Shown: positions 9,358 to 56,897 of the stretch, in pieces
Numbering within the stretch: the stretch's first letter is position 1
Layout of the letters: each line of letters starts with the position of its first letter
Assembly: GCA_004431415.1 (NCBI GenBank)
Contig: QPMI01000180.1
Location: 62,001-126,000 of the forward strand
Source: Cyanophora paradoxa CCMP329
Lineage: Eukaryota; Plantae; Glaucophyta
Length of the DNA: 64,000 nt
Direction: 5' to 3'
The notes under the pieces: generated by a model
Database searches by the model: none
What the model was told of the DNA's origin: nothing
The model's input: the letters and a program-made list of their open reading frames with translations, nothing else
Program-made: the position numbers and the translations under genes

Positions 9358-10798
9358 CGTGGACTGCGCTCGTCATGGCCCACCGCCTCCCCTCCCTCTT
9401 CGAGCGGGCGCGCCCGCCGCCGCGCGCCCTCCCCCTCTCTTGTCCGCGCGCTCTCGGCTGAGGCCGGGGCGGGCGGGCGGGCGGGCGCAGCTCTCGGCGC
9501 TGGTGAGGATGCTGCTGCTGTGGCCGCTGCACGCCGTGGCGGACGCGCTCGTGTACAAGAAGATCCGGGAGGGCCTGGGGGGGCGAGTTCCGCATGGCGA
9601 TCTGCGGGGGCGGGGCCCTCGCGGCCTTCCTCGACGACTTCTACGAGGTCGTCGGCGTCCCCATCCTCATCGGCTACGGCCTCACCGAGACGGCGCCGAC
9701 CCTCACCGCCCGCCGCGAGGTCGCCAACGTCGCCCACAGCGCCGGCCTCCCCGTCCCCGGCACCCAGGCGCGCCCGCCCCCGACCCCGCCCCGCATTCCC
9801 TCCTCCTATCCCCCGGCGAGCGGGGCGGCGGGCGGGGCGCAGGTGCGGGTGGTGGACCCGGAGACGCTGGCGCCGGTGGAGGCCGGGGCGACGGGCCTCG
9901 TGGTGGCGCGGGGCCCGCAGGTGATGGCCGGCTACTACAAGGACCCCGAGGCGACCGCCAAAGTCCTCGACGCCGACGGCTGGTTCAACACGGGCGACCG
10001 CGGCTGGGTCACCCCCGGCGGGCACCTCGTCATCACGGGGCGGTACAAGGACATCATCGTGCTGAGCAACGGGGAGAACATCGAGCCGGCGGCGGTGGAG
10101 GACGTGCTCATCCGGAGCGAGCTGATCGACCAGGTGGTGCTGGTGGGGCAGGACCAGAAGAGCCTCGGCGCCCTCGTCGTCCCCAACCTCGACGCCCTCC
10201 GCCGCGTCCGCCCTCTTTCCTCCCTCCCCTCCCTCCCCTCCGCTACGCTCTGCTCTGCTCTGAGCGGGCGGGGCCGGGGCGGGGCAGTGGGCGCGGGGTC
10301 GGGGGCGGGGCGAGCTCGAGCGGGCACGCGCGGGAGGACGTCAAGGCCGTCGTCCAGTCCCTCGGCCCAACCCGGGCGTCAGGTCCGCCCCCCCGCCCCC
10401 CCGCCCGCCGCAGGCCCGCCCCGCCGCGGCCTCACCCGCGCCGGCCCGCCCCCGCGCAGCCCCGAGCAGGTCGACCGGCTCTTCGAGACGGAGATCGCCA
10501 AGTGCGCCCCCGCGCCGCGGGAGAAGGGGCGGGGCGGGGCGGGGCCGAGCGCGGGGCGGGGCGGGGCGCAGGCTGGTGAGGACGAAGGCGTCGTTCCGGC
10601 CGGACGAGAAGATCGGGGCCTTCCGGCTCGTGCCCGAGCCCTTCACGATGGAGAACGGCCTCATGACGCAGACCCTCAAGATCAAGCGCAACGAGGCCCG
10701 CCGCCCGCCCGCCCGCTGCCCGGCCCCCGGCGCGCCTGACCCCGCGCGCGCAGGTCTACGACCGCTACGAGGCCCTCATCCGCGAGATGTACGAGTAG
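9358..10798 (+). pseudogene. 5'-truncated Aas copy 3
   Basis: Same truncation and same +1 G as copy 2, a Y>H change in NVAYS, and a diverged 3' flank. Confidence 0.85.
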
Positions 10799-11937: not shown

Positions 11938-14900
11938 TCAGGGGGCGGCGCGGGCGGCGCGGAGGTCTGCGAGGACGGCGCGGCAGGCGCGCTTCCAGCG
12001 AGCCGTCACCTGCCACCGCACGAAGTTGGTCATCACCTGCGTGTAGTAGACGGCCAGCTCGGGGAGGCCCTCCGCGATCGTCCGGTACAGCGGGATGACG
12101 ACGACGCGGAAGAAGAAGATCTGGCCCTCGGCCCACGCCAGCTGCTGCTCGAACGCCGACCCCTTCGTGTCCATCCCCGGCGACACGTTGAAGCCCAGCG
12201 AGAGCTCCCGCCTGCGCCGCAAGCCTCAGGTTTGCGGTGCGCAGAGACGCGGGCGCGAGGAGGGGAGGGCGGACCGGCCCTGGCGGAGGAACTCCTGGCG
12301 GAGGCGGCGGGACCAGTAGATGGCGTTGTCGAAGCCGCGGGCGGCGTTGGAGAGGTCCGCGCACTTGATCATCATCTCGCCGAGCAGGCGCGCCTCCTGG
12401 AACGAGAAGCCGCCGCCCAGCTTCGAGATGGCGGCCTCGGGGGGCGAGCCGGCCGGGAACGAGCGCGCGTACTCGCGGATGTACGACGCGTTGCGCGTCA
12501 CGTCCGTGGCGAGCACGAGGGCGCGCAGCATCGCCCGGAAGCGGGCGCGCTGGCGGGGGCGCAGGCGGTCGAGGATGGCGGCGGGGCGGAGGGCGCGGAG
12601 GGCGGGCTCGAGGGGGGCGCCCGGACCGGAGGCGGCGTTGGCAAGGGCGAGGACGGGGCGGAGGGCGGGGTCGGGGGCGGAGGGGGTCGTGGGGGACCGC
12701 TCGTCCGAGGATGCCCCGCTGTACTGCTCGGGGACGTGCGCCAGCGAGGCACGCCGGGAGCGGCCGCCGGCGGAGAGGGAGCGGGGCGTGCCGGGCCCCG
12801 TGGCGGGGCCCGGGGCGAGCCCCCAGGGGGAGCTGCGGGCCGAGGCGGGGGAGGCGGAGCGCGAGGCCTCGATCCGGATCTCGATGGAGGGCGGCGGGGC
12901 CAGCGAGCTGCCCGACGAGGCCCGCCCGCCCCGCCCGCCCCGCTCCCCTCGCTCCCGCCGCCGTCCCCGCGCCGCTCCGGCTGCTCTCCGCACCGCTCCC
13001 GCTCCCGCTGGGCGCCGCGCTCCCCACGCTGCTGAGCGGGGCGGCGTGGCGCGGGGCCTCGGCGGCGGGGGCGGTGGCCTGCTGGTAGCCGGCCTCGAGG
13101 GCGTACGCGTGGCCGGCCAGGTCCTCCACCTCGACGGAGTAGGCCCGGCGGCGGCCCCGCAGGCGGCCCCGCTCCTCGCGGGACCCGGCGCCCTCGCCGG
13201 CGGCGGGGGCGCCGTGGTGGTGGCCCTGGCCCTGGGGCAGGGGCACCGAGGCCTTGTCCTCCGCCTTCACTTCGGAGCCGTACACGAGGTCCTCCTCCTC
13301 CGCCGCCTCCGCCCCGTCCAGCTCCAGCAGCTGCAGCGCGCAGTGCAGCTGCGTCCCGCAGCTTTCAGGCCCCGCAGGGGGGCGAGAGCGCGCGGCGCGG
13401 CGCGGCGCGGCGGGGCGAGTCGGGGGCGGGGGCGGCGCGCACGTGCATCTTCTCGAGGGTGGAGACGGCGCCGTAGGCGAGGAAGACGGGGGACTGGGAC
13501 TCGCGTTGGAAGATGTTCGTGGTCCCCGGGTGGCTCAGGTCGTGGCACAGCGCCGCCACGATGCACGCCAGCTGGTCCTCCTGCGCCCGCCCGTCGGACC
13601 GAGCGAGGCCGGTGGCCTGGGCGCGGTGGGCGGGGCGGGAGCGCACCGGCGCGAGGTACCGCCGGCGGTTGCAGAGCAGGCGGATCATGACGTACATGCT
13701 GCGGGCGGGTCAGGGTGCGCCGCGCGGTTCGGGGAGGGAGGGCGACGCGCCAGTGGCAGACGTCGAGGGCGTGCTGGAAGCTGTGGAAGGGGGCGGGGGC
13801 GTACATCTGCCGCACCGCCTGCGGCGCGGGGCGTCACCGGCGTAGAAATCACGGCCGGGAGCGGGCCGAACGGGGCCGCACGGAGAGGAAGGGGCGGAGG
13901 ACGGCGCGGGTGATGCCAAAGTGGGCGTCGAGGCGGAGGCCGTGCAGCATCGCGTGGACGAACTCGTCGTGCCGCTCCGCGGGGATGCGCCACGTGCACA
14001 AACACGGGTCGTCGATCTGCGGCGGGGGCGGCGTCGGCGGGCGGCGTCGGCGGGGGCGGGGGCGCGCCGGCGGCGGGGCGGACGATGTGGGCGAGGTCGA
14101 CGTGGTCGGGGATCATGGCGGGGCCGGCGGCCGCGAGCGCGTTCATCGCGGCCGCCGCCGAGCTCGCCCGCCGCGAGCGCGCCTGGGCCTCGCTGCCCGC
14201 CGCCGCGGCCGCCGCTCGCGGGGCGGGCCGGGCGAGGGCACGCGCGAGGCCTCCGGCGGGCTCGCGAGGCTCGAGCCCGGGGCCGGGGCGAGGGTCGCCG
14301 CCCGCGGCGACTCCGGATCGTCGTCCTGCCGGGCCGCCTCCTGCCCGGCATAGGCGCGCGCGTCAGGCCGGCGGGGCAGGGCGGGGCGGGGCGGGGGCCT
14401 GTGACCTGCTGGTGGGCCTGCCCGGCGGAGGCGTCGCGGTGGCGGGGGCGGGCGGCGACGAGCCAGAAGGTCTCCATGGGGCCCTTGCCCTGCACCTCGA
14501 CCTCGCCGCGCCCCTCGAAGACGAACCCGCGCCCCGCCAGCCGCTCCTGCACGGCCGCGGAGCAGTGCACGCGGTTGGGCTCCCCGCCGCCTCCAGCCGG
14601 CTCGCCGTGTTCACCGCGTCGCCCACACCTGCCGGCGGGGCTCAGGCGCGCCGGGGCCGGGGCGGAGCGCCCGCCGGGCGGGGCGGGGCGGGGCGGGCGG
14701 GGGGGGGGGGGGGGCGGGGGAGGGGGGGGGGGGCGGACGTCGTAGAGGATGCGCTTGCGGCCGACGACGCCCGCTACGCACGACCCGCAGTGCTGCGCCG
14801 CGCGGGGCGCTCAGCTTGGCGGGGCGGGGCGGGGCGGGGCGGGTGGCGGACGAGGCCGATGCGGACGGCGATGGGCTCGCCGTCGGGGGTGCGGATGCGG

Positions 14901-17706: not shown

Positions 17707-19370
17707 TTTAGTCAGGCGAAGCCTCTTTCTCAAAACCAAAAACGAACGGGTCCAAATTCCTTTTTTAACCTTTTTTTCCACTCGAGATCCCCCCTGCTAA
17801 ATAATTTCCGCGTCGCACTCTTTTTTTTAATTAAGATCTACGGTGGGCGTGCCCACTCGTCGCACTCCCTCGAGGCAGAATTATTAATTCTGCCTCGACA
17901 CGGACGCGATTGCTGCTAATAACACTGCTACCCTAACCCCCACAGACCTCTCTAAATCCATTTTTAGCGTCCTGGCTCCCCTAAGACGACCGCTCGCCCT
18001 TGGGCGTCGCGCGAAAATCGAATTTCCCTCTGGATCAATTCCGGTACTTAACCTCCGACAAATGCAGTCCAGGTCAGAAGGTGGCACCCGGTCGCGCCCG
18101 GTCCCGCGACGAAAACGCGCCAGGGACGCCCCAGAACGATACAGAATGACGCACGAGCGCGAGCGCATTGCCACAAGCTCGATTTCGGGCGCCGTCGACG
18201 CTCCAGTGCGAACAGTCGGCCGAAAATTTGATCCAGCCGGTCCCGGCCGGTCCCGCGACGCGCGCAATCGATGTGTACTGGCGCGCATAGACATAGCAGG
18301 GCCTGCGCACCCCCGAAATCCGCTTTTCGGAGGCCGAACAGTGCAGCAAGGTACCGGACATCAAAAATTCGATCCTGCACAGGCCCGGACATCTTTCCGC
18401 GCGCCCACGCCGCGGCGCACGCGCGGAAGAATAGCATAAGCATTTGAGATGTAGAAGAAGCTTTCCGCACGTTTTACAGATGCGCCGGGCCGCGGGGACC
18501 CACCCGACCCCGAAAATTCGATCCTTCACGGACCTGCACAGCTTTCCGCGCGCCCTAGCATCCTCACGCGAGAGCGCATCGCTACCATATTCATTTGGGA
18601 TTTTATCAAAGCCTTCCACAAGCTTGGAAGACGCGAAAGAGCACGAGAACCCAGCCGGCGGCAAAACTTTGATCCTGGACAGGCCCGGACAGCTTTCCGC
18701 GCGCCCACGCCGCGGCGCATGCACGGAACAATAGTATAAGCATTTGAGATGTCCGCAAAGCCTTCCGCATGCATTGCGTATGCGCCGGGCCGCGAGGACC
18801 CAGCCGACCCCGAAAATTCGATCCTTGACGGACCTGAACATCTTTCCGCGCGCCCTCGCATCCTCACGCATGCGCATCGCTACAATATTCATCTAAGATC
18901 TTTTAAAAGCCTTTCGCAAGCTCTGCAGACGCGACAGGGCGCGGCAATCCAGCCGACGCAAAACTTTGAAAATTCTATCCTGGCCACGCCTGCACATCTT
19001 TCCGCGCGCCCTCCCCTCCGCAGCCCCGCACATCGATGCTATATGCATTCGAGATTCTGTTTAAGCGATTCGCAAGCTCTGTACATGCGCCTGGCCGCGA
19101 GCCTTGGAGAACCTCGCCCCTCCCGGGCCTCCTTCCCAACAATATTATATAATTAATCTCCTCTCAGTATGCTCCACCCTTTATTTCCTCAGCACATTAA
19201 TATTCCTCTAGCCGGCCAGGGCTAGCTGGACTGGCCGTCAGCTAGCCAGCTTCCAGCCAGAAAGCTGTTCGCTGGCCAGTCGCTGAGTGCCCTATAGGCC
19301 TACTGTGACAGCCGCGAGGGCGTCCGCGAGGCTTCGCCGTACTTAGTGCTCCGCAGGAGCACGGATCTTG
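17707..19370 (+). mobile_element. Putative non-autonomous Helitron/Helentron-like element
   Basis: 11-bp inverted pair GGCGAAGCCTC (17715-17725) / GAGGCTTCGCC (19328-19338). Then hairpin GTGCTCC-GCA-GGAGCAC (19346-19362) and CTTG|T (19367-19371). Lower GC, non-coding, with internal tandem repeats. Confidence 0.45.
18215..19100. repeat. Degenerate ~150-bp tandem repeat with ~300-bp higher-order (A-B) periodicity
   Basis: AAAATTCGATCC-like anchor at ~18222, 18363, 18512, 18663, 18812 and 18969, followed in the last five units by CTTTCCGCGCGCCC. Alternate monomers are much more alike (e.g. ATAAGCATTTGAGATGT at ~18436 and ~18736). Confidence 0.85.
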
Positions 19371-24500: not shown

Positions 24501-27500
24501 CCGGCGCGGGCGTCGGGAGGCGGACGGGGGCGCCGCCGCGGGAGGGCTGGCCACGGGACTCGGGGAGGGCTGGGGCGTCGGGGTGTGGACGGGGGCGGCT
24601 GTGGGGGTCGCCGGGGCGGGCGCCACGGCCGGCAGGCTCCCAAAGGGGAGGGCGGGCAGCTCGCCCGGGAGGGGGTACGTGCAGGCGCTTTTGGTCTCCG
24701 GCACGGTGCCTGCGCGCGGATCTCGATCTCGAGGGAGCCCGGCGCGCAGGGAAGAGCCGGGGGGTACCGGAGAGCGAGAGGAGGCGGGACTGCGGGGCGG
24801 GCGGGCCCGTCGCGCCGAAGAGAACTCTGGCGCGTGGGCGGGCGGCGAGACCGGGTGAGGGGGCGGGGCCGGGCCGGGGCGAGGGGCGGGGGCGGGCGGG
24901 GCGGGCGCACGCGGTGCAGGCGGGGCAGTCCGAGGCGAGGAGGAAGGGGCCCTCGAGGGGCGGGAGCTCCAGCTCCAGCTCCTGCTCCGCCGCCCCGTCT
25001 GCCCCGCCCGCGCTCGCCGTCAGGCCGCGGGGCGGGCGCGCGGGGCGCGGGGGCTGCGCGGCGGGCGGGCGGGCGGGGCGCGCGCCGGCCGGGTCGAGGA
25101 AGGCGACGGCGGCGGCGGAGGCGGCGGCGCCGGTCGAGTTGGCGAGGAGGGCGTAGAGGTGCCCCTGGCAGGCCCCGAGGCGGAAGGCGGCGGGGGCGGA
25201 GGGGCGCCGGAGCACGCCCACGAGGCGGAAGGCGCGGCCGCCCGCGCCCGCCGCGTTGCGGCCCAGGTCCACCGCGCTGCCGGCGCCGGAGGGGGCGGCG
25301 TGAGCGGATCGAACTCGCTCGAGTTCGGAGGGGATCGAGTTCGGAGGGCGCGCACTGGAGGGAGATGGCGCTGGAGCCCTCCGACGCCCCCGCCACGTAC
25401 CACGTCGCGTCTGCCGGCGAGTCTAAGGCGGAACCTCGACGCGAGGGGCGATATCGATCGCGGCGGCGGGCGTGGCACCGAGGCGGGCGCAGGACGGGGA
25501 AGGGCGCGGGGGGATGTCGAGGTTGCCCTGCCGCACCTCCGTGCCCCAGGCAGCCCCTGCCAGCTCCAGGCTGCGCGGCGGGCCGTCGGCCCGGCGCCGC
25601 GGACGGGGCCCAGCGAGAGGGAGCCGCGGGGCGCGGCCGACCTGAGCATGTCGTTCCTCGAGGCGACCGTTCCTCCCGTGGAGCCAACCCCGCCGAACAC
25701 CTTCGCGCGAGGGCGCGTCAACGTCGCCGGTACGGTATGAAAGCTCGAGGCCGGGGCGGGGCGGGGCGGACCCAGAGCCGCTGGTCGTGGAAGGTCGCGC
25801 AGTGGCCCGCCCTCGCGACGGGCATGGGCGGGAGGTCGGCGCGCGCCTCGAAGGAGACGGGGAACGCCCACGCCGCCGCCGCGAGGCTCTCCGCCGCGGC
25901 CGCGGACCCGACGTACCCCCCTGCGGACGAGGATCGGAAGCGCTCACGCCGGCGGGCGCGCGACGAGGTCCGCGCCGCGGCCCGCTCACCGGCACAGAAG
26001 ACGACGCCGCTCTGGTCCCACGCGCACTCCATACCGAACCCGTCGAAGGGCGCGCGCGCCGCCGCCTCCGTCCACTCCCCCATCCCTGCGCGCCGGCGCC
26101 CTCACGATGGTCAGCGGGCCGAGAAAGCAGCGGCGCCCGAGGAGGTCGGCGCGCCTGCGTCGTAGACGAGGACCGCGGCGCTCGGGGCCGGCGCGGCGGC
26201 GTCTGGGAGCCTGCCGAAGAGGGCGAGCTTGGAGCGGCCGAAGGCGCTGCGGAAGAGGACGGCCGCCGAGAAGCGGGCGCCGGCGGGGGCGAGGGCGCCC
26301 GGGGCCGCCCCCTCGCTCCCCTTCATGAGGAAGATCCCTGCGGGGCCCTCAGGCGCCGATCGCGAGCCCCGCCCGGGACGCGCCGGCGAGGGCTAGCTAC
26401 GGCGCTCACCGGGGACGGGGGCGGTGGCGGCGGGGGACCACGGGGACTCCCTCCCCGCCGACGAGACGACCCTCGCGCGGCACGAGGCGGACCAGGCGCC
26501 GCTCTCCGACGCCGCCACGCGCAGCGACGCCGCGAGCGGCGGGGCGGCGCCGGCGCCGGCGGGGAGCGAGGCGGCGTAGGGCCGCCGGCGCCGAGGCACT
26601 GCAGCTCGGCGCGGGCGGCGCTCTGGCCCTCCGTGAAGGCGATCCGGAGGGACAGGAGCGTCGCGTTGACCGCCGCGAGCGCCTCGACGCGCGGCGCCGA
26701 CGGCGCGGCCGCGGGGACGGGCAGCGACGCGAAGGCCGGGGGCGAGAGGAGGCCCGTCGCCGCCGCCCGAGCGACGAAGGTGCAGTTCGCGAGGTAGCCG
26801 GCGCTGTACTGGGGGGCGATCGCGACGAGGGCGGCGACGCGGCCGGCCGCCTCCTGCGGGGCACCGATGGGCGCGCTCGCCACGTACGGCCCTCCGAGCC
26901 CGCTGCAGTTGCAGGCGACCTGCGACACGCCCTGCGCCGCCGAGAAAGAGAGCTCCGCCCGCAAATGCGTCTCGTTGACCAGCGTCAGAACGATGCCCCA
27001 CGGAGCCCACGGGTTGGCTGCTCGGGCCGGGGGCGATCATGAGGCGCGAGAAGCGTCACATGGCCGATGTCAATGCGACGCGACGCACCCGCCGACACGA
27101 GCAGGGAGACGTTGGCGGCGGCGGTGCGGAGCCCCGAGGCAGCGAGGACAGCGGGCGAGCACGAGACGGTGTAGTTGCCGAAGTAGTTCGGAGACACCGG
27201 CACGGGGACGGTCGCCCCGCCGGAGTCCGCGTCCGCCACTCTCGCGCGCACGAGGTACGGGCCGCCAAACCCGTCGCACTCGACCTCGACTTGGCTGACG
27301 TTCTGGCCCGAGGTGAAAGCAACGCGGAACTGCAGGAGCGTCGAATTCACGGCCGCCGTGGCAAGACACGTCGGCATCTCCGGATGCGCTGCGACACGGC
27401 CGCGTAAGCCGAGGCAAGATTCGAGATACGGGGAAAAGGGAAGCAGAAGCAACAAAAGAAACACACCGGCTGGTGTCGTCACCAAGTCTGCCGATTTCCA

Positions 27501-30500
27501 GGCTGACGCCTCGCCTGTCGATGCCCGCACGCGCGCCTTGCAGCTCAGGTCGTAGCTCCCGCCATACGACGGCGCAAGCCCCATGCTGATGTTCAATCCA
27601 GGCGCTGCAGCGTCCGTCGCCGTCGTGTTGACAGAATACGGTCCGCCGAAGCCCGAGCACTCAATCTCCGTCGCAATGACGCTCTGATCCGCCGTGAAGC
27701 GGACGCGCGCCACCGCCTGCGTCGCGTTGACGATGAAAACAGCCACATCCAGCGGCGCCCACGGCACAGCTGCAGGAACCGCGTCCAGTCAACGAGCGAG
27801 TTGGAAGCCCCTGCAACACGAGGGCCGCCCGCACCTGCCGGCACAGTCCTCGCCGCTGCAGCCGTCCATGCCGACACCAAACCCGTCGACGCCCGCACAC
27901 GGGCCGAGCAGCTCAGGTCGAAACCGCCGCTGTACGACGGCGAGAGCGGGACGCTGACGTTGAGACCCGACGCGTCGGCGTCGGCTGCCGTCGCGTTCAC
28001 TCGGTACGGGCCGCCGAGCCCGCCGCACTCGACCTCGACTTCCACAACGCTCTGGTTCGCTCCGAACGCCACGCGCAGCGTTGCCAGCGTCGCGTTCGTG
28101 GACGCCACCGTTACTTCCGCGGGGGCCCACGGCGCGGCTGCGCAGCGGAGCAGAACGCGCACGTCAGCCGCCGCAGGCTGAAGGCAGACCTCTTGATGCT
28201 ATCGCTACGGCGCTGATCATGACGTGCACAACATCACAAGCGCACCCGCTGGAACCGATGCAGGGGCCGCAGAGGTCCAGGGCGACGTTAGTTCCGTCGA
28301 CGCCCGCACGCGCACTGCGCAGGCCAGCTCGTAGCTGCCGCCATACGACGGGCTGAGCTGGAGGCTGACGTTGAGGCCGCCTGCCACCGCGTCCGTCGCC
28401 GACGCATTCAGCCGGTACGGGCCGCCAAAGCCCGAGCACTCCACCTCGGCCGCCGCGACGAACTGGCCTGCAGTATAGCGCACGCGCATCGCCGCCTGCG
28501 TTGCGTTGGTCGAGGCGACAGCGACTTCCAGCGGCGCCCACGGCGCGGCTGCGCATGGCACAAAACAATCACCGGAATGAATGCCCGAAGAAGGTTTACG
28601 CGAAGGCGACATACCTGAAGGAACAGCCGCTGTTGCCGCCGCCGTCCAGGCTGATGCCTCGCCCGTCGATGCACGCACGCGCGCCTTGCAGCTCAGGTCG
28701 TAGCTCCCGCCATACGACGGCGCAAGCCCCATGCTGATGTTCATTCCGGGCGCTGCTGCGTCCGTCGCCGTCGCGTTAACAGAATACGGTCCGCCGAAGC
28801 CCGAGCACTCGATCTCCGCCGCAATGACGCTCTGATCCGCCGTGAAGCGGACGCGCGCCACCGCCTGCGTCGCGTTGACGATGAAAACAGCCACATCCAG
28901 CGGCGCCCACGGAACGGCTGCAGGAACCGCGTCCAGTCAACGAGCGAGTTGGAAGCCCCTGCAACACGAGGGCCGCCCGCACCTGCCGGCACAGTCCTCG
29001 CCGCTGCAGCCGTCCATGCCGACACCAAACCCGTCGACGCCCGCACACGGGCCGAGCAGCTCAGGTCGAAGCCGCCGCTGTACGACGGCGAGAGCGGGAC
29101 GCTGACGTTGAGACCCGACGCGTCGGCGTCGGCTGCCGTCGAGTTCGTTCGGTACGGGCCGCCGAACCCGTCGCACTCGACCTCGACTTCCACAACGCTC
29201 TGGTTCGCTCCGAACGCCACGCGCAGCGTTGCCAGCGTCGCGTTCGTGGACGCAACCGTTACTTCCGCGGGGGCCCACGGCGCGGCTGCGCAGCGGAGCA
29301 GAACGCGCACGTCAGCCGCCGCAGGCTGAAGGCGGACCTCTTGTTGCTATCGCTACGGCGCTGATCATGACGTGCGCGACATCACAAGCGCACCCGCTGA
29401 AACTGATGCAGGGGCCGCAGAGGTCCAGGGCGACGTTAGGTCCGTCGACGCCCGCACGCGCACTGCGCATGCCAGCTCGTAGCTGCCGCCATACGACGGG
29501 CTGAGCTGGAGGCTGACGTTGAGGCCGCCTGCCACCGCGTCCGTCGCCGACGCATTCAGCCGGTACGGGCCGCCAAAGCCCGAGCACTCCACCTCGGCCG
29601 CCGTGACGAACTGGCCTGCAGTATAGCGCACGCGCATCGCCGCCTGCGTTGCGTTGGTCGAGGCGACAGCGACTTCCAGCGGCGCCCACGGCGCGGCTGC
29701 GCATGGCACAAAACAATCACCGGAATGAATGCCCGAAGAAGGTTTACGCGAAGGCGACATACCTGAAGGAACAGCCGCTGTTGCCGCCGCCGTCCAGGCT
29801 GATGCCTCGCCTGTCGATGCCCGCACGCGCGCCTTGCAGCTCAGGTCGTAGCTCCCGCCATACGACGGCGCAAGCCCTATGCTGATGTTCAATCCAGGCG
29901 CTGCTGCGTCCGTCGCCGTCGCGTTGACAGAATACGGTCCGCCGAAGCCCGAGCACTCGATCTCCGCCGCAATGACGCTCTGATCCGCCGTGAAGCGGAC
30001 GCGCGCCACCGCCTGCGTCGCGTTGACGATGAAAACAGCCACATCCAGCGGCGCCCACGGCACAGCTGCAGGAACCGCGTCCAGTCAACGAGCGAGTTGG
30101 AAGCCCCTGCAACACGAGGGCCGCCCGCACCTGCCGGCACAGTCCTCGCCGCTGCAGCCGTCCATGCCGACACCAAACCCGTCGACGCCCGCACACGGGC
30201 CGAGCAGCTCAGGTCGAAGCCGCCGCTGTACGACGGCGAGAGCGGGACGCTGACGTTGAGACCCGACGCGTCGGCGTCGGCTGCCGTCGAGTTCGTTCGG
30301 TACGGGCCGCCGAACCCGTCGCACTCGACCTCGACTTCCACAACGCTCTGGTTCGCTCCGAACGCCACGCGCAGCGTTGCCAGCGTCGCGTTCGTGGACG
30401 CCACCGTTACTTCCGCGGGGGCCCACGGCGCGGCTGCGCAGCGGAGCAGAACGCGCACGTCAGCCGCCGCAGGCTGAAGGCGGACCTCTTGATGCTATCG

Positions 30501-33500
30501 CTACAGCGCTGATCATGACGTGCGCGACATCACAAGCGCACCCGCTGGAACCGATGCAGGGGCCGCAGAGGTCCAGGGCGACGTTAGGTCCGTCGACGCC
30601 CGCACGCGCACTGCGCAGGCCAGCTCGTAGCTGCCGCCATACGACGGGCTGAGCTGGAGGCTGACGTTGAGGCCGCCTGCCACCGCGTCCGTCGCCGACG
30701 CATTCAGCCGGTACGGGCCGCCAAAGCCCGAGCACTCCACCTCGGCCGCCGTGACGAACTGGCCTGCAGTATAGCGCACGCGCATCGCCGCCTGCGTTGC
30801 GTTGGTCGAGGCGACAGCGACTTCCAGCGGCGCCCACGGCGCGGCTGCGCTTAGCAATCGGTTTTTGCCTTGCTTGAGACTGATTAAACCATGTCGCACC
30901 GGGAGGGACGATGACAACACCGGCCTGCGCACGAGCGAGGAACTGCCCGACGGCCGCAAACGCGTCGACTGCGCAGTCGAGGCCGTAGGCCGCAGAGAAA
31001 GAGCTGGCAACGGCAAGGGCGATGACCGCGCGCGACGCGTCCGCGTCCGCAACGCCCCTTGAAGAAGCGAAGGACTGCCCAGCAAACAGGCCTCCTGGAC
31101 GTGCTGTGCAGTTTGCGGCGAGGGAGGCGATGCCGCGACCGAAGCCAAAGCTCGAGACCACGGTCACACTCCCCGCGCCAGCTGAGCTCGCCGAACAGAT
31201 CAGTGGCCTCAGGTTCTCGCCTGTGCGGCAACCGGTCAACACAGCTGAGAGGTATCTTTGAGAACAAAAGCATCTCACGCGCCATTGTCTTTGACCACAA
31301 AGTAGTTCGTGAGCTGGTGCGACTGGACGGTCTGGTTCGACGCGTCCAAAATGCGAATAATGTAGTCGCCCGCCGTGCTGTTGGCGGGAAGCTGTAGCGT
31401 GATGTTCCCTCCGGCGGATTCGGAAGCGTTCAGATACGTGCTCGAGAGGACGACCCCGCTCCAGGACTGGCGCGGCCTCGATCGTGAGCGCTCGCGGGGC
31501 GAGGTGAGACGCCAGGTGAGGGCGGTCGCGCACGAGGACGGCGCTGCCGTTGCTGGGGAGGAGGTGCGCCTCGAGGGGGAAGGACCAGGCCGCCGCCGTC
31601 CACGCCAGCGGCAGGGACGTGTTGGACCAGATCTCGTACCCCGCCTCCCAGTGGAGGAGCTCGAGCAGATTCCCTGCGAGGCGGCGGCGTCGGCGCGCTG
31701 CAGGCAATGCGCACGCGGGCGGCGGCCGACGCGCATGCTGGAATGGTGAAGGAGGGCGTCCGCAGGCTGTTTCCACCCGCCGGAACGAGACGCAGCTGGT
31801 AGGAGCCTGCATTGAGAAGAGAGGGGATCGGGACGTCGAGCTGCCCGCCGGTCTTTAGTAGAATGACGGACGTCAGCAGACCGAGCTGAGAAGAGAGCAA
31901 TCGAAAGTGAGCTCCAGGCCCTTCATGATCATGAGCAGGTTATGAGCAGGAATGACACCTCGATTGGCGGCGTGTTGACGCTGGAGTCGGCAGCAGTGAG
32001 AACCACGGAAGCGGGGCCGTACGAGCGACTCGCCGCAGACCACGTCACGTTCAGCTGCGCGCGAAGAAAGCTCAAGTGAGTTTGAATTCCCTGTAGATCT
32101 TAAGCTTGAACAGAGTATCCAGAAAAACCGGACAAAGAGCTCACGCTGGATCCCCTCTGTACAACCTGGCCGACGGAGGGGCCAGTCCAGGTCACGGAGG
32201 CGGCGGGCACGGTAACTGGACCCGCACTGAGCAGCGTGCACGCGACACCAGAATATCGATAGAAAGAGCTAGAGAGAGCCGTGATCATGACATACCCGTC
32301 AACTCGACGAGGGAATCAGAGTAGTCATATACCGGACTGAAACTCGTGTCCCAGCCCGCAGCCATAAATCTGCAGCTTCGTCAACGGCTGCGGGAGGAGG
32401 GCGGGTGCACTGAGCGGGGCGCCGCGCGAGCGCACATCTTGCAGGCGAGCTGGCCCCCGATCTCGAGGTCGTACGCGGCCTGTGCAGCTGCGAACACAGC
32501 AAGCCTTTCGCCGGGGTAGGCAAAAGGGTATCCAGGGTTGTACGTGAATTCCACGACTCCGTCTGCAGGATGCGACAACGTATTCAATGAGGTTCGCGCT
32601 GGAACTGAATGTCAAACGCACCCGCCGGATTGATAACTGCGTGAATGGGTCCACCTTGCGCTGCGCATGCCACATAGTGATCATGAGCTCATCGCATTCG
32701 GAATTGCTTGAACGGTCCAAGGAGCGCCGCACGAGCAGACATCCAGAGAAGCCCTTGGCACGGCGCCGCATACTCGACTAAGCCCGCATAATAGCCGGTG
32801 GAAACGGGGGTCAAGAAAGTCCAGCGCTTGGGAGATGCCGCCGCCAGATCCACATAGCTGCGTTGACGTTGCGCGGCAGTCAAATGCGGAGAGTGGGCAT
32901 ATAGAAAAGCGCACGCGCGCGCACTACACGTCGTACTGCGCGATGAAAAACCGGCTTCCTGCAGAGGCGGACTGTAACTCACGATCATTCTTAAATGGCA
33001 TCGATATCGGCGTGCATTATCGCACCTTGCCGAGCACATGAATTCAGGCGGCGGCCGCTCATGTCGCTGTTCCCTGCAGGCTCTTGTAAGGCTGAGCAAA
33101 AAAGCAAACCGGATATTTCAGTCGTCAGCATACCGTTCGGGATCTCGACTGTCCAACTCTGAGAGCTGGGAGAGTATCTGCGGCAGAGAGGGCCGGGGGA
33201 ACGTTACAAGTACTACAGGCAACTTCGCGTGAGTAGACGGGTCGCACCGGAGGAGGTCATTGAGATACGTTGAGCCGGGCCCGATACCGGCAGCCAGCCA
33301 GAAGCTGCCTCCAAAAAACGTGACGCAAAAATCGTTGCGATATCCGTACGCAGTCAATATTTCTCGTGACTCTGTCGCCACGTCGAATCTGTAGAACGAG
33401 TGCTCATCTGGGACGCGTACGCCCTTATCATCGGCAAGAAGATGCGGGCGGGCCGGGGCGGAAGGGCGCACGGTAGCAGTAGATGAAATTCGCCCCATCC

Positions 33501-42800: not shown

Positions 42801-44519
42801 GAATGCCCAGCCGATGTTGTCGAAGTTCGTGTATCCCTGCGTCGGGTTCGAGAAGGGCGCGCCGCGGGAGCGCCACTGCGGGTTGAGCTCCGTGGTGAAG
42901 GGCCCGCAGTAGATCCCGTCGTGCGCCCCGCGCGCCGGCTCCGCGCTCGCCTCGCACATGCGCAGGGGGTAGTTCACCTCCTCGTCCCGCCTGCGCGACC
43001 CGCCGCCTCAGCGCCGGGGCGGGGCGGGGCGGGGCGGGGCGGGGCGGGGCGGGGCGGGCGCACTGGGGGATGCCCGTGAGGCCGTCGAGGCGGCGGTAGC
43101 GCAGCTGGCCCTCGAAGATCTGCACCCCTGTGTGCACGCCCCTCAGCCCTCAGGCCCGCCGCGCCCCGCCCCGCCCCGCCCCGCCCCGCCCCGCCCGCTT
43201 GGAGGGGCGCACCCTGCGCGCGGGGTCAGAAAGGGGGCGGGCGGGGGGGAGAGGCGCGGGGGGGCGGACGACGATGCCGAAGACGATGAGGAAGAAGACG
43301 AGCTGGAAGCAGACCTGGATGAAGAGGGGCAGCGCGGCGCGCACCGTGTCCACCAGCAGCCGCGTCCCCGCCAGCACCTTCATCGTCCGCACGATCAAGA
43401 ACGCCCGGATCGTCCTGCCCGCGCAAACACACAACCCCAGGCTCGCAAGGGCGGCGAGGGTGGCGCGCCGGGCGGTGCGTCGGGACGGGGCGGGAGAGCG
43501 GACGTGAAGTTGGAGAAGGAGGGAATCTGGGCGAGCCAGCCGAGGACGACGACGGCGAGGTTGAGGGCGTGCCAGCCCGTGCGCAGCAGCGCGCCCCGGT
43601 GGAGGGCGAGGCCGTAGGCGAGGGCCCCGAGGAGGAGCTCGGCCGTGAAGTAGCAGGTGAAGACGAGCTCGGCGGTGTCGAGCCAGGCGTTGACGGAGAG
43701 CTGGAAGCGGTTGTCGCACGTCGCCGCGCTCGTGCACTTCGGGTCCCGCAGCGCCACGAACGCGAAGTTGAGCACCTGCCGCCCGCCCCGCCCGCGTCGG
43801 ACGCGCAGCCGGGAGCGCCGGCGCCAGGGGGGGCGGGGCGGGGCGGGGCGGGGCGGGTGCACGGTGGCGACGAGGGAGAGGAAGCCGTAGAGGCGGCACT
43901 CGAGGAAGGCGCGGCAGGCCCGCCGCACCCGCCCCGCCCGGCCCGTGTCCGGCAGCAGGAAGAGCGCCCGCTGCGGGTCGTTCACGACCTGCAGCCGCCG
44001 CGTCGCCGCCGCGAACTTGCGCTTGAGGCGCGTGCGCCAGCCCGTCTCCTCCTCCGCCTCCATGTCCTCCGCAAGGCCCGACATCAGCCCCGTCTGCTTC
44101 TTCGCGAAGGCCCGCGCCACAATCGCCGCCGCCGCCTTCATCTTCTTGGCCTCAGCGGTGTTCGCCGACACTGCGCCGCAGCGCACGCGTCAGCTCCGCC
44201 TGTGCGGCATCCTTGGCCCTGGCAGCCGCCTGGCCGCCACGCGCCGCGCCCGCCACGCACTTCTTCCCGTGGTGGGAGCTCCTCCAGCGCCCGCGGCCGG
44301 CTCGCCATTGTCGCCCGCCTGCGCCTCCGGCTGCTCGGCATCTTGCTCGGGCGGCTTCCTGACGCGCTGGAGGGCCAGGGCCGGCACGGAGGACTGGTGC
44401 CGCTCGCCGGCGCCCTGGTGCTGCTCGACGGAGCCAGCGCCGGTCGGCGAGTCGGGGGGGAGCACGGCATCGCTCCTGGAGACCGCCGGCTCCAGCCGCT
44501 TGCTGGCCGATCTCTCCAT
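35617..44519 (-). CDS. Four-domain voltage-gated cation channel alpha subunit (Cav/Nav-like), multi-exon; exact 3' end uncertain
   Basis: Four pore loops: NFDNIGWAFLTIFQFFTLSQW, NYETVFQSALTTFQIITGDNW, NFDS...LFEITTLEGW, NFRSTAFSMLTLFR-MMTGENW. S4 segments ALRALRPLRLLR and IRATRILRVFR. III-IV linker FMTPAQKQW. C-terminal EF-hand-like EFARHWELLDREAT and IQ-like AAKMVQRRWR. Confidence 0.92.
42030..42330 (-). repeat. Coding minisatellite (21/27-bp units) encoding tandem R-(L/V/A)-G-S-A motifs in the channel I-II linker
   Basis: Translation RVGSASARVGSATARAGSATGRGPRLGSAGSHPQLASASSLHRIASQHRLGSAGSQHRLGSAGAYPRLGSAGSQHRLGSAGAHAARVGSA. Confidence 0.8.
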
Positions 44520-46353: not shown

Positions 46354-47174
46354 CTACTTCATCTGCATAGCTTCCGGGGCGTCCACGTGTATAATGGAGT
46401 ACGCGTTCGTGCGCCTCTTGACCTCGCGCGCGTCCTGGCAGTCCAGCAGGCAGCCGCAGCACATGAGGGTGCAGCACACCTGTCGCGCAACGGTGAGCGA
46501 GCGAACGACGCTGGCGGGCTTAGCTTTGAGAGCAGAAGGCAGCATGAGGAGCGCACATCGTGGACGTAGTTCGTCTCGATCCCGTACCGCGCCCTGTGCT
46601 CGTGCCTCCACAGGAACCCCTGCCCCGCAGCGCCGGCCGAGGTTAGGCCCGTCGAGCGGCGGCGCGGGCGGCGGGCGGCAGACCGTGATGCAGGGGCCGC
46701 AGGGCATGAAGTAAGAGAGCATGAAGTTCATCCACAAGTTGGAGCGAGGCTGCCGCCGTGTTAGGCGGGCGAGAGCGGCCTCCGAGGGCGTCCGGCCCTG
46801 CGCACCTCGGCGCGCTTGTGGGTGACTGCTTGTAGTGCGGACTGGCAGAAGCATCCTATGCAGCATGTCTCTCTGTCTGTGGCGCAGTCCCAGGGCTAGG
46901 CGAGGTCAGCTGGGAGGGCCGAGAACTAAAGAAGCGCAGCTAAGCGCGCCCGCAGCAGGCCGTCCTTAAGCGGTCAGGCGAGGTCAGCTGAGAGGGCCGA
47001 GAACTAAAGAAGCGCAGCTAAGCGCGCCCGCAGCAGGCCGTCCTTAAGCGGTCATAGCGCTCTATGCATTAGCTGCACGCATTAGCGATGCGTTGCGGGC
47101 GTTGCGGAGCAGCTGCCGGCTCGTTCGGCTGCGGCTCGGCTGCGGGAGCTCACTGCGGAATAGTAGTGTGCCAT
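46354..47174 (-). CDS. PLAC8/cornifelin-family Cys-rich protein
   Basis: Spliced MAHYYSA-PWDCATDRETCCIGCFC...FMPCGPCITVC-GFLWRHEHRARYGIE...CCTLMCCGCLLDCQDAREVKRR. Confidence 0.8.
46898..47053. repeat. 78-bp near-perfect tandem duplication in the first PLAC8 intron
   Basis: AGGCGAGGTCAGCTG...CTTAAGCGGTC at 46898 and 46976, one mismatch. Confidence 0.93.
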
Positions 47175-50593: not shown

Positions 50594-51365
50594 GCCCCCG
50601 GCCCCGCCGGATGGCCGAGGCGGCTCCAGCCGCGCCGGCCCCGGGCGCTCCCCGCCCCGGCCCCGGACCGGGCGCCGGCCGGCGCGCTGGGCGCCCACTG
50701 ATCGTGACTTCGTGAAGTCTGCCAAAACTTGAGAAAGTTGAGCTTCCGGCCGTCGCCCGCGGGACGTACGCGGCCGCGGGCGGGACGCGGCGGGTACGTC
50801 CAGCTGCAGCACCGTCCGGGTGGGATATATCATAGTATCGATCTCGAGGAGCGCGACTCCGGGAGCGCGCGCCGGCGCCCGGCGTGCGGGGAGCACTGGC
50901 ATGCCCGAGGGTCGGATTCATGCCGGGCACAAATTCCGCACAATTGCAAATAAATGAGCCGCTTGAGGCGGCTGCGCTTCCGAAGTACGCGAAGTTTAAG
51001 CTTAGGCTTATACGCGCATATATGTCCGACGCCGGTCTGGCCGCCGGCGCGCGGCGGGCCGGCGGCGGGCCTGCTCCGCATGTCCGCGGCAATGATCCGA
51101 TGATCATGATGCGCACGTGCACGTGCCGCAGGCCCGCAGCCTGCAGCCTGCAGGCCCGCATGCGCCGCGAAGGCCCGCGATGCGCGCGGCGTTGCGCGCA
51201 CGAATCGGCAATGATTTGGCCGGGCATGCGCGAATAAGCTATTTTGTCTCTATGCCCCCTGGGCAGCCCCCGCAGTGCTGGTGTCTAGAGACTGTGGCCG
51301 GTAATTCACCAAAAAAAAAAAAAAAATTTATTAAATTTCCGATTTCGCCTTCACCGATTCATCCC

Positions 51366-54300
51366 TGTAGTGCGCCAAATAAAATGGCGCGCCATCTTAT
51401 TTTTATGGCGCACGCTTTTGAGCCATCGCAGAAAAAAAGGCGCCGGCCAGCGCAGCCGGAGCTTTGCGTTGGGGAGTACTGCTAGGCTAGCTGTCGCGAT
51501 CGAAATCGCCTATCATTATAGCCTACCGCCGGGCTACCGGTATAGGACCGCACTGGGCGGGAAGCGGTCGGGGAGCCGCGCGCGCGCACCGAGCCCGAAG
51601 GCGCGGCCCCAGGCACATCAGCAATGAGGTGGTGGGAGCATCCAGATGTCATGAAGATGTCCCACTTGTGCCACCAGTTGTCCTTGTCCTCCACTGTTCC
51701 CTTGTTGAAGTCCGATATTTCGCCACGCAGCGGCCGCGGGTGTGGCCGGTACGTGATAGAACGGCGGAAGGTCCTGCGATCCTCTACCTTTCCTACAGTG
51801 ACCGCGGGGCCATTCCGAAGTGCAAAAGTCATCTCGCCCTCGGCGTCCGTCTCCTCGAGCTGCATCCAACACGTGAGCAGCGGAAACGCAACGCATGCGT
51901 TGGAATTGCGTAGTTACCTGCAGGGCTAGGAAGAGTTCGTACTCGGCGTCCCAATCGAGCTCTACCTGAGCGTACTGCACGTAGTGAACCGTGGATGTGT
52001 CGAAGTGCAGGACGCGCCCGGGTGCCTGTCCGTATGCTGTCTTGGACTGGTCGAATGGCACGAGGATGGTGTGTTCTCTCTCCGTACTCCTCCTGCCGCG
52101 AACCACGAGACGCGTTTGTGGCTCGAGATCGAAATGCGGCGGCCATCGCAGCTTGAGAACTGTTTTCACGATCTGTTTCCGTCCGTTCCAGATGTGCGTT
52201 GCCACCTCATCTGCGAGGGCCTTCTTGGAAATGCGGCCCCCACCCAGGTGCCACAAAATCGGGTGAGGCCTCAACGCGTGGTTCACACCTCTGCCAAGAC
52301 GTGTAAGTAATAACGCAATGCCCACAAAATATGCCGTTGCACGCACACAACACCGCCGCCGTCTTCCGGTGCGCTCGCTGGAGGGCGGAAAGGCGACGTC
52401 GACGCTTCCTCCTCGGGGTCCACGGCAGCTCCGCGCGACGGTGTTCCACTGTCGTGCTCGATGCCAGCTGTTCCATGTAGAGCTCTGCCCGTGCCGGAGC
52501 GGAAGTGAGAAAAAAGTTATGCTCGCCTCAGAATGGGTCTCGAGAGTTGCGGGCGGGCATCCTCTGCGGCTCCTTCTGCACCGTTCAACCTGCAGACATT
52601 ATCGGAATATTTTGTGACGTGAATGGGGCATTGCATACTGCGTGGGAGTGCTGCAGGATCGGACAGCGTCTAGAAATGTGTCATCGACGGCGACGGGGAT
52701 GACTTCACGCTTGCCCCGTTTCCTGCCACCGTCATCCTGTTTGACTGGCTGAAATATGTATGGCGTCATATATTGGACAACCTCGTCCCCCTGTTTAATG
52801 GCGGCCCCGATGATGATGGGGTCATCCCGCGGCCACTCAATGACCACAACGAGGGGGCCTCCCCCCGACGATGTCTCCGCTGCGAGACGGGGTTCGAGCT
52901 CGGCGTACTTGTGCGTGTTGCACAGCCTCCACGGGTGCGACGTCACCCCTGGTTGGTGATCCCATACCGCAACAACTTGCTCCGAGCCCGGAGGGAGGTC
53001 GTCGTTGGGCTTTGTGAAGCACAGATACGACGACTTCGCATTGTATGCCCTTATGTGCTCTTGTTCGCGGATGAAGTGCTGAGCACGACTGAGACTGAGA
53101 GGTTTCTCCGTTCTGATTCACAACAACGCTACATCAACGTATGTACAACGCAAGCGTTGAGTATGCGTTGCAATGCTATGCTCGCCTGAGAAAGGGTTTG
53201 GATGACAGCTCCAGGATCGAGCCGCCGTCTGTAGAGTTCGAGCTGCACATGTATAATTACAGTCTGATTAATTACAGTACCGATTGTATAATTATTTGCG
53301 AGGACTGCCCATGCGCACCCGGTTTCCTGGTTTACGTAGGCCAACCGGCCCCGGGCGGGAGGGAGTATCTTGGGGGCGAGTGGACTCTCTCCGCCTGACT
53401 TGGCTTTTGCGCGCTCTGCCTTGCTGCGAAGCTGCCGAAAGCTGCTCTGCTTTCCAGGATTGAGAATCTTGGGAAGGGGCGGCAGCTGTCGGGGATTTGG
53501 GATTATTGGCTCCGCCGCCAGCTCATGTGCAGCCTTCCTCTTCTTTCGGATTTTCGCTGCAGGCGCCTCTGCCGGCTTCTCCGCTGCCACCGCCTTGTCC
53601 TTCTCCTTCAACTTCTTCTCGGCCGCCTTCTGCGCTGCGTGATTAGAACTCTTTCCTATGCCAGGCACTCGCACAGATCTAGAGTGACGCGAAAAACTGC
53701 ACCCTCTCATGTGCTGCCGCGGCAGCCTCTGCCTGCGCCTTCGTTTTCGCGGCCTCATTTTCGGCTGCAGCCTTCTTTGCTGCCACCGCCTTGTCCTTCT
53801 CCTTCGCTTTCTTCTCGGCCTCCTTCTGCGCTGCGTTATTAAAACTGTGCCCCAGGCCCGGAACGCTCGCACAGAGTGCCGCGCAACACTGCACCTTTTC
53901 CTGTGCTGCTGCCTGCTCCGCCGTTTTTGCGGCCTGCTTTTCTGCTGCGGCCTTCTTCGCTGCCGCCGCCTTGCCCTTCTCCTTCGATTTCGCCTCGGCC
54001 TCCTTCTGTGCTGCGGTATTAAAACTCTGCACTATGCCCGGGACTGGCACAGATTGCGTTTTTAAGACTGCACCTTCTCTGTCATTGCTGCGGCCTTGGG
54101 CTTCTTCGCCTCCTTCCCCATCTCCTTCTCCTGCTTCTTGCGCTTCCCTGCTTCCTGCTTCGCATGCTTCGCCTCCTGACCCTTCGTCTCTGCCTTGCGG
54201 TTGCGCTTCCTCGGGCTTGCCGCCTCTGCGTCCTCGTCCTCGTCCTCGCCCTCGTCCTCGTCCTCATTCCCGCTCTCGTCGTCGTCCTCGAGCTTGTCCT

Positions 54301-56347
54301 CTACGTCATCCTCCTCGTCGGACTCTGCGGGCACGGAATCAACGCAAATTGCGCTGTGTCTTTGCAACGCAGACAACGCAATATCAACGCTTGCGTTGAC
54401 GATGCGTTCTGCATGCGTTGTACACATCGCGCACCTTCGTCTGTCGGGGCGGCGCTGGCGCGTGCCTTGCCCTTCTGCTCTGGCATTTTCCTTGCCGGCT
54501 CTGCAAGTGCAAAAGTGCGCGTGAGCCTCGTGGCAACACGGAGGGAAGTTGAGTACGTCAACACTATTCAACGTATGTCAATCAACGTATGCGTTGCGAG
54601 GTGTTGACATATGCGTTGGTATTGCGTTGGAACAGCGCCGCGTACCTTCGAACGAGTCGCGATGTTCGATTTCCTGCTTCTTCTTGGACCTCCTCTTCGC
54701 CCCCGTCGCCTGGTACCTGCGTGGTAAATTGTTTCCACCGGTCAGTTTCGTATCGGTTGCTCGAAATAATGGAACTCTTGCTCACTCTCCCCTGTCCACC
54801 GCGTCCTTGCCATCCATCCAGCCGGCTACGTTCTCCTCCATCACCGTCAAATTGTGACTCCCTAGGATGAAGTCGGCGACATCCAGAATGCCGGGTCGCG
54901 AGATGCCCTTGAGCTTGTAGTGATCGTCCGGCACCTCCTGCTCCGCTTTCCTCATCCTTAGAATGCACAGTCTGTTCGGAGTGTACGCATCAGGGGCGTG
55001 GCATCGTTGCCCCATCTTCAACGCACGCACATGTTCTCAATGTTATGAAAATAGACATCTGTCTTGCATCTCGTGAGGGATTGAAGGTGGCTGAGGTCCT
55101 CCTTGTCGAATGGGGTGAGCAGCGGCCGCAGTCTGCTCAGCGTGTCGTGCGTTTTGCGGGTGCCGCCCCCGCACTTCTGCATCCGCGAGAGAGCTTGAGA
55201 TATAAATTTAAATTCTAACTCGATGCCATAACTGAAATTAAGGGACGGCACCTTGAGAAACAGCCAGGCTCGCGGGCATGTCTCCGGAGTGTACTCCCCC
55301 CCCGATCCCTCGATCGGCTCGTCCCACAGTAGCCGCACGACGTCCCGTGCCGTGTTGCAGTCCCCAGTGCCGCGCTTGCCATCCGTGTCCTCCTTCAGGT
55401 AGTTCGCGCCTGTCGCCGCCCTCTTCTTTGCTCGAGGTTCACCTGCAGAGGCGATCGCAGCTCCGACGGATCTCTGGACCTGCAAGGCCACGGCCTCCAC
55501 GAGCGAACTCAGCTGCGCCGAGTCCGACGAAGTCGCCGCCTGAACCGTCTGGGGCGCCGGCGCTGCAGCTGCGTGCTGCGCCTTGCCGCGCTTCATGAGC
55601 TTCACAAGTTCGGGGTCGGCGTTGCTGTCGCCGTCCTCGTGCGCTGGCTGCATGTCCCGCCGCACGACGTAGAAGAAACATCCGGGACTGAGCTTCGGCA
55701 GCTTCCGAGACGCAGTCCTCAGATCGAGGGTGTCCGCCTCCGGATCGTAGAAGTACAGGTCCAGGCCCGCAGGTCCGACGGATTGCGTGAAGCGGAGCTG
55801 CCGCTCCGCATCCTTCAAGAGCTCCGCAGGCCATCCCGTGCCTCCCTCGACCTCGATGGTCACCGTCGCTGCGTCACGGGCAAGGTGCACGCGCGGTCGG
55901 GCATCAGCGCGGCGCCCGGTGCGCGCCTTCGCATCACAGCTCAAGAGTATCGAACCTTTGGTCGTAGTAAGGCCTCCGTTCTGCCGGCTGTCGGCGAGAA
56001 CACGCACTTCGACTGGTTCCGCGGGCGCCTGCAGCTGCCCTGCGCGAGCCGCCGACTCTTCGGCTCCCGCAGCCGCTGCTGCGTCGCTCGACTCGCCTAG
56101 CTTAGCCACTTTGCCCTTCTTGGGCGCCATGTGAGGACCGCCCCGCCCGCTGCCGCAGTGCTGTCTGCCGGCTGCTGCTGTGCGCGCTACCTGTAGCTAT
56201 AGTACTATTGCATCATACGCTGGGAGTCGTAGTAGCCCCCCCAACGCAAAGCTCCGGCTGCGCTGGCCGGCGCCTTTTTTTCTGCGATGGCTCAAAAGCG
56301 TGCGCCATAAAAATAAGATGGCGCGCCATTTTATTTGGCGCACTACA
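51366..56347. mobile_element. 4,982-bp TIR DNA transposon with TGT...ACA ends and 5-bp TSD (Ginger2/TDD-like ends)
   Basis: 109-bp perfect TIRs at 51366-51474 and 56239-56347. ATCCC duplicated at 51361-51365 and 56348-56352. Lower GC than host genes. Confidence 0.95.
51482..56130 (-). CDS. Element-encoded protein of unknown function, ~14 exons, ~1,200 aa, with acidic tract and Lys/Ala/Glu-rich repeats
   Basis: GT/GC-AG junctions read by eye keep one frame from MAPKKGK (56130) through ...ENI-LCILRM, EYQATGAKRRSKKK, ESDEEDD, KEAEAKSK, GSNSTDGG, KPLSLSRAQHF, GVNHALRPHP and LQ-LEETD to the stop at 51482. The junctions at 52.3-52.6 kb are the least certain. Confidence 0.7.
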
Positions 56348-56897
56348 ATCCCCACGGGCCACTGCGCAGCGGGGTACGGTGAATTATTGCCATATAGGTA
56401 GCTCGAGAGTCGCCGAGTCTTAAGCCTCTAAGGTAGCCGCTTAGCTGCGCGGCCTGCGGCGCTGCGCCCACCGCACCGCCGGCCCGGCGCCGGGTACCGC
56501 CCGTCGCCCGCCAGCATGCACTGCGGCAGCTGCGGAAGCCTTGAAGCACAGCCATAGTTGCAGCTGTGAACAGTGAATTTCCCCGCTCGAGCTCGCCGAG
56601 GATCCGCAGCCGGATCCCGGAGTGCCGCATTCCGGCTCGTCGGCGGCTGTAACGCCCAGATCCGTATCGTATTTCGTCGCTTTTCTTGCCGCGGGTGTGC
56701 AGGCGGCCACACAGACTGCGCTGGAGCGCGCGGCACAGTTATCGTCGTCACCGCCGACCCGGCGAGGCCCGCGCACGGCGCAGCGACGATCTGGCGTCCG
56801 AGAAGGAACATCATTCGGAATGGTGACAGCCGGCCGCGGCCCGCCGCGGCCGCGGCCGCCCGACCACCCGGCGCCGGAGCGCCATGCCCTGTTACGC

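Follow-up and report, generated by a model that had tools for sequence, protein, structure and literature searches.

Non-autonomous derivatives of terminal inverted repeat (TIR) elements, of the Ds and dSpm type, keep both ends, have lost the transposase region by deletion at microhomology, and need a full-length sibling. CACTA/EnSpm elements begin with 5'-CACTA and are flanked by a target-site duplication (TSD) of 2–3 bp. For Ginger2/TDD, the portion of the published description used here gives TGTNR termini, TIRs of 45–297 bp, and 5-bp TSDs in TDD-4/5 (PMC2836005), and the same portion gives 4-bp CCGG/CCGT TSDs and the markers YPYY, H2C2, and GPY/F for Ginger1 (PMC2836005). TSDs of ∼4, 15, or 25 bp for IS481EU and of 6 bp, mostly with TA..TA ends, for IS3EU/GingerRoot are found in the parts of two sources drawn on (PMC10045372, PMC2836005). 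The window analyzed here is a 64,000-nucleotide stretch from the glaucophyte Cyanophora paradoxa CCMP329 (contig QPMI01000180.1, positions 62,001–126,000 of the forward strand), and positions 51366–56347 of it hold a TIR element with a large orphan gene. A first-pass annotation, made from the letters alone, described a transposon filled by one intact gene and offered two options: a new or highly divergent transposase, or a non-autonomous element maintained to carry an accessory gene and mobilized in trans. We consider it likely that a larger cut-and-paste transposon of C. paradoxa with two genes, most likely of Ginger2/TDD type, gave rise to the element by internal deletion, leaving it non-autonomous. 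Such a non-autonomous derivative is a known kind of object.

The element is 4982 bp long, with TGTAG termini on both sides (TGTAG...CTACA). Its TIRs start with TGTAGTG and are 100% complementary over 109 nt, and ATCCC stands directly outside each of them as a 5-bp TSD, seen at this one locus; both features had been proposed in the first-pass annotation and held on direct comparison. GC content is ∼60% in the element versus 67–82% in the adjacent kilobases. The outer part of each TIR (51370–51413 and 56300–56343) is an imperfect palindrome in its own right (79%), from which a hairpin is possible. The TGTAG ends agree with the TGTNR termini of Ginger2/TDD, the TIR length of 109 bp falls within the range of ∼45–300 bp, and ATCCC fits a 4-/5-bp TSD. 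Ginger1 was rejected because the TSD here is the 5-bp ATCCC and neither HHCC nor GPY/F is present, IS481EU and IS3EU/GingerRoot because their TSDs are incompatible with ATCCC, and CACTA/EnSpm because the terminal word is reversed (TGTAGTG start) and the TSD is 5 bp.

The gene carried on the minus strand, referred to below as the accessory gene, runs up to a position at which other copies of the family part from this one. The main DNA contig of run X3 (3091 nt) follows the window from 51650 upward, and its first 437 letters differ; contigs of X15 and X3 track the left arm as far as 51651, beyond which they run on for at least 255 unlike letters. Because contigs from both sides diverge there, extra DNA is present in other copies between 51651 and 51650. 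In the frame of the gene, the loose letters read L-K-K-stop directly after Met at aa 1153, and MLKK is the C-terminal end of five annotated sister proteins, so that the native end lies 4 residues after WDIF and the native protein has ∼1156 aa in the numbering of this copy. The element is an internal-deletion derivative of longer family members, with which it shares its ends (left-arm-identical contigs run on past 51651) and relative to which it has lost at least 437 bp together with the native stop.

The stop of the open frame lies 7 bp from the left TIR, as first reported, but the neat fit carries no significance: it is an artefact of read-through, because the last 55 codons read the antisense of the left arm. 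A tail-like stretch stays open by chance in 21–27% of shuffles, and the tail has a GC fraction of 0.71 at the second codon position versus 0.47 in the native part. One could turn the argument around and take the 5-kb form as ancestral, with the longer copies carrying a secondary insertion at 51650/51651 and a 2-bp CA duplication. The CA overlap is readable as a 2-bp TSD, and X17 and X20 are rich in junction-type transcripts, which come in two haplotypes. Yet, within the 30 visible letters, the extra DNA does not end in mutual inverted repeats, the inserted DNA would need both to give a stop three codons on and to carry forward an ATG frame begun in the arm, the codon GC of the tail is noncoding-like, and the main DNA contig (X3) is of the long form. 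An ancestral 5-kb form is thus highly improbable, and deletion is preferred.

The left arm tells what may have been lost. On the plus strand, the frames of two ATGs (51624 and 51646) stay open across the 30 visible letters of the extra DNA, and the ATG at 51624, with 51646 as second candidate, is probably the start of a convergent second gene, of which a stub is left here. The idea of a transposon filled by one gene therefore had to be given up, since additional DNA is present at 51650/51651 in longer copies and another frame, convergent with the accessory gene, opens in the left arm. The deleted gene was most likely a transposase, and we infer a Ginger2/TDD-type integrase because of the end signature, namely TGTNR termini, a TIR length in range, and a TDD-4/5-like 5-bp TSD. 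It is unlikely that the lost gene was another transposase, or none, and that the family is mobilized by an element with matching ends; TG...CA ends with 4–6-bp TSDs are common to several integrase-type groups, and the lost gene has been read in its junction-side letters only, whereas the end pattern and TSD length match those given for TDD-4/5 in the part of the source used (PMC2836005).

In the parent of the proposed deletion derivative, the transposase gene would start in the left arm on the plus strand and converge on the accessory gene on the minus strand. A microhomology-type deletion would then have fused the first ∼28 coding bases of the transposase gene to the accessory gene within its final codons; without its stop, the accessory gene would read on for 55 codons. 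With both TIRs retained, the enzyme of a full-length sibling could mobilize the copy, leaving the 5-bp TSD; this copy may have moved in trans in this way, and deletion in place is also possible. The second option of the first-pass annotation, a non-autonomous element with an accessory gene mobilized in trans, is supported by the evidence for a deletion derivative. Some observations weigh against this explanation: no empty target site is found among the public sequencing contigs listed; only 30 letters of the extra DNA are visible on each side of the junction, its 437 bp being a minimum size; and RNA contigs of X17 and X20 carry the deletion junction together with two different sets of alleles, which needs inter-copy recombination or conversion.

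Features of the element, with positions in the window
Feature	Position	Strand	Basis
Left TSD, ATCCC	51361..51365	.	direct sequence comparison
Left TIR, 109 bp, TGTAG start; GCGTTG word at inner edge, 51466	51366..51474	+	
Left arm: probable promoter, with the opening codons, of lost convergent gene	51475..51651	+	function inferred
Read-through tail, 55 codons, aa 1154–1208, left-arm antisense; non-native	51482..51649	-	
Deletion junction, 2-bp CA microhomology; at least 437 bp missing	51650..51651	.	
Accessory (cargo) gene, aa 1–1153	51650..56130	-	frame model, splice joints, sister gene models
Exons 1–5	56130–55252, 55176–55031, 54971–54786, 54716–54646, 54500–54435	-	
Exons 6–10	54324–54074, 54005–53895, 53825–53703, 53629–53319, 53242–53186	-	
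Exons 11–15	53112–52639, 52589–52527, 52484–52347, 52290–51918, 51859–junction	-	
One CAACGC-WW-GCGTTG palindrome, intron 14	51860..51917	.	
Segment unlike commoner copies (142 nt here versus 95 nt in those): most of exon 13 and the unsupported acceptor of intron 12	52370..52511		
CAACG/CGTTG array, intron 10, spacing 11, 11, 9, 11	53113..53185	.	
Acidic, then Lys/Ala/Glu-rich low-complexity middle	53569..54324	-	
CAACGC/GCGTTG arrays, introns 5 and 4, spacing 9, 11, or 22 bp	54325..54645	.	
Candidate ubiquitin-like (beta-grasp) domain, aa 78–165; lead only	55636..55899	-	Atlas feature neighbors
Right TIR, 109 bp; CAACGC word at inner edge, 56242	56239..56347	-	
Right TSD, ATCCC	56348..56352	.	

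The accessory gene was modeled with 15 exons and 14 introns (12 with GT-AG and 2 with GC-AG boundaries), giving 3627 nt, 1208 aa, and a single stop at 51482–51484; only one of six alternative acceptor combinations yields this open frame. The ATG at 56130 lies 108 bp inside the right TIR, as had been claimed. A frame open across ∼13 introns had been described, and it is indeed open over 1208 codons, with the intron count corrected to 14; likewise, the gene is open but not natively intact, being a fusion across 51650/51651. Joints for 11 of the 14 introns (1–4, 6, 7, 9, 10, 11, 13, and 14) appear in contigs of three RNA-like runs, so that the predicted splicing is largely borne out. The label "RNA" is a guess of the tool, but the runs do hold spliced RNA, since the joints fall at GT-AG/GC-AG sites and are absent from the DNA run. 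In these runs, loose ends back intron 5 and record coordinates back intron 8, and intron 12 (42 nt, GC-AG) has no support in the form of this copy, the RNA contigs having another version of 52370–52511. A public annotated protein of the family has 1125 aa and is ∼95% identical to the 15-exon model. Within exon 1, public models remove an extra in-frame intron (55869–55955), a stretch that long RNA contigs retain. A joint at 55973–56096 in X20 and X3 is present in DNA and so is a deletion variant.

Derivatives of the junction type are transcribed and spliced, a statement that applies to the type and not to this exact locus. Junction-spanning RNA contigs reach 51622 in X17 (an overhang of 29 letters past the junction, slightly below the 31-letter threshold) and 51634 in X20. 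The exon 11 and exon 13 alleles of this copy were not seen in the RNA contigs, which drop rare variants. In abundant X15/X17 RNA contigs, positions 51976–53527 are skipped at a 4-bp TGCA microhomology, with upstream letters identical to the window; the skip removes 1256 coding nt, shifts the frame, and brings a stop at codon 745. It is not listed in DNA run X3 and probably represents a second, well-expressed deletion derivative elsewhere. The protein of tig00021612_g22862 consists of the first ∼60 residues of this gene, then left-arm antisense, then unrelated sequence, which suggests a ∼0.7-kb mini-derivative lending its start exon to a neighboring gene model.

Relatives of the accessory protein are EukProt proteins of C. 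paradoxa, and pieces of the family occur in 13 annotated contigs, possibly with this locus among them. Protein searches with the accessory-gene exons gave no relatives outside Cyanophora. Exon 14, searched against 1.84 billion representatives, returned two Cyanophora copies and three repeat-summation artefacts (P0022–P0024), which were rejected as relatives, and exon 11 returned one Cyanophora copy. P0010–P0014 were also rejected, being short cluster members that come from a soxD contig of bacterial origin (L001:1–2921) and are unrelated. Scans of metagenome and viral contigs came back empty. X3 DNA depth is 575 over the 3' half of the gene and ∼1230 over the left arm versus 59.6 for the flank contig, and one RNA contig exits the right TIR into a different flank. 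The family is multicopy, and about ten or more copies would fit the annotated contigs and the X3 depth, although depth does not equal copy count. A partial list of inter-copy differences in the globular parts holds 16 non-synonymous and 6 synonymous changes (ratio ∼0.9). The listed differences appear close to neutral, with no sign of purifying selection, and so lend no support to the suggestion that the element is maintained to carry its gene.

In layout, the accessory protein has an unstructured N terminus, a candidate ubiquitin-like domain, a helical region, ∼300 aa of low complexity, and beta-rich C-terminal exons. The Atlas feature neighbors of aa 78–165 (0.82–0.86) are TDP-43_N, GRHL1_C, Ubiquitin_GT-1, CIDE-N, KHA, and DWNN, all beta-grasp, and the model has a strand–helix order compatible with a ubiquitin-like fold at a predicted local distance difference test (pLDDT) score of only ∼45; Pfam gave no match for this region, which is possibly a ubiquitin-like domain. 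Exons 7–9 derive from a tandemly duplicated ∼180-bp intron-plus-exon unit (77–82% identity), and Lys/Ala/Glu-rich low complexity makes up one quarter of the protein. Exon-by-exon scans gave no relevant Pfam, PHROG, NCBIfam, or PDB-sequence matches, and a motif scan of the protein found no HHCC, GPY/F, or CxxC motif. No RNase H-fold was among the matches in three structure searches, which used low-confidence single-sequence folds too weak to exclude anything, an RNase H/rve core included. The first-pass statement that there is no recognizable transposase core or motif agrees with these results. Structure matches to Ig-like sandwiches and helical hairpins were discarded as evidence (Z < 8, template modeling score ≤0.5, low-confidence folds), and likenesses seen by eye between exon 11 and EVE/PUA and between exons 1–3 and BEN domains were dropped, having no tool support.

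The first option offered, in which the orphan protein (∼1150 aa) would be a transposase, either new or diverged beyond recognition, is a shade less probable even than an ancestral 5-kb form. The protein has no homologue outside Cyanophora, its folds, at pLDDT 55.6 and 40.2, are too poor to rule out an RNase H core, and exons 2–3 and 14–15 lie outside the native-domain folds. Against this, longer copies contain a second gene, and the protein, one quarter of which is of low complexity, offers no DDE-associated motif, no family match, no RNase H-fold row in the three structure searches, and no other transposase signal. A copy that a deletion has left with its accessory gene alone is no evidence for a transposase of a new kind. 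Simple host-gene capture, as in a Pack-type element, would suit a eukaryotic gene with many introns and perhaps a ubiquitin-like domain, but the relatives found are all near-identical copies, and protein searches gave no more distant host paralogue. Moreover, a long residence of the gene in the element is indicated because its introns are AT-richer than the host DNA of the window and carry the TIR word; host-gene capture is accordingly the least probable of the explanations considered.

This TIR word recurs through the noncoding parts of the element. A motif scan showed CAACGCWWGCGTTG arrays in its introns, with 16 hexamers in 1022 intron bp versus 0.5 in shuffles (maximum 4) and 0.9 per kb outside. 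There are three exact motif palindromes, besides the one motif copy at each inner TIR edge. Our best guess is that the accessory protein would be a nuclear, oligomerizing factor that acts on the CAACGC arrays of the element itself. The host Cyanophora silences transposable elements (TEs) by CpG methylation (PMC12344493). More specifically, and rather doubtfully, the orphan protein might be a sequence-specific self-recognition or anti-silencing factor that binds the phased CAACGC arrays, with accessory-only copies as its main expressed source, helping full-length copies. If this were true, a glaucophyte transposon of the integrase type would have acquired a VANC-like system by independent evolution.

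Other repeats and genes are present in the window. Three tandem ∼4.0-kb units (97–99% identity) occupy 1555–10687, with a 185-bp part inverted at 13432–13616. Five diverged ∼150-bp tandem units form a low-GC stretch at 18362–19099, and a weak DUF977 match (E 1.7e-4) in a frame overlapping them is probably incidental. A minus-strand coding region at 27490–30864 contains a nine-unit repeat (period 368/411/369, with a three-unit higher order of 1148 bp), one unit of which was searched against Pfam and gave no match. The minus strand at 43398–44189 has an Ion_trans match (E 3e-7), a host channel gene, and two tandem 78-bp copies (98% identity) lie at 46898–47054.

These results remove a false lead, since the apparent one-gene transposon is a deletion copy and the neat TIR fit is read-through. 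The copy is a natural separation of two genes, in which the accessory gene and arrays are kept and the presumed transposase is gone, and the abundant junction-type transcripts make methylation and expression comparable between copies with and without each gene. The interest lies in the parent family, with a large orphan accessory gene and helically phased, CpG-containing arrays in a host that silences TEs. As in Ds-/dSpm-type derivatives, the ends are kept, the presumed transposase region was deleted at microhomology, and the copy would depend on a sibling; unlike them, it keeps nearly the whole of a second gene, which is spliced and transcribed.

With Ginger2/TDD (TDD-4 and TDD-5), as far as the portion of the description used here goes, the element shares TGTNR termini, TIR length, a 5-bp TSD, and multicopy occurrence (PMC2836005). 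It differs in that this copy has no integrase, the known families in that portion being 2.8–6.7 kb (PMC2836005); a Gypsy-integrase-like DDE transposase was not found in this copy by family, motif, or fold match, and it is therefore not filed as an autonomous Ginger2/TDD member. No second gene is mentioned for Ginger2/TDD in the same portion of the source (PMC2836005), whereas the parent proposed here would have a large, convergent, intron-rich gene and phased arrays. Ginger1, IS481EU, and IS3EU/GingerRoot, in the parts of the two sources used, resemble the element in TG-type or related ends and have integrase-family enzymes (PMC2836005, PMC10045372). The VANDAL/VANC system of Arabidopsis MULEs likewise combines a TE-borne accessory gene with a short, high-copy motif in noncoding parts of the element (PMC6719617), as seen here in the enrichment of the hexamer in introns. 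The setting is also similar, with a CpG inside the motif and a host with CpG methylation of TEs (PMC12344493). The two belong to different superfamilies and no sequence similarity was found between them, so the likeness to VANDAL/VANC is one of functional analogy only (PMC6719617).

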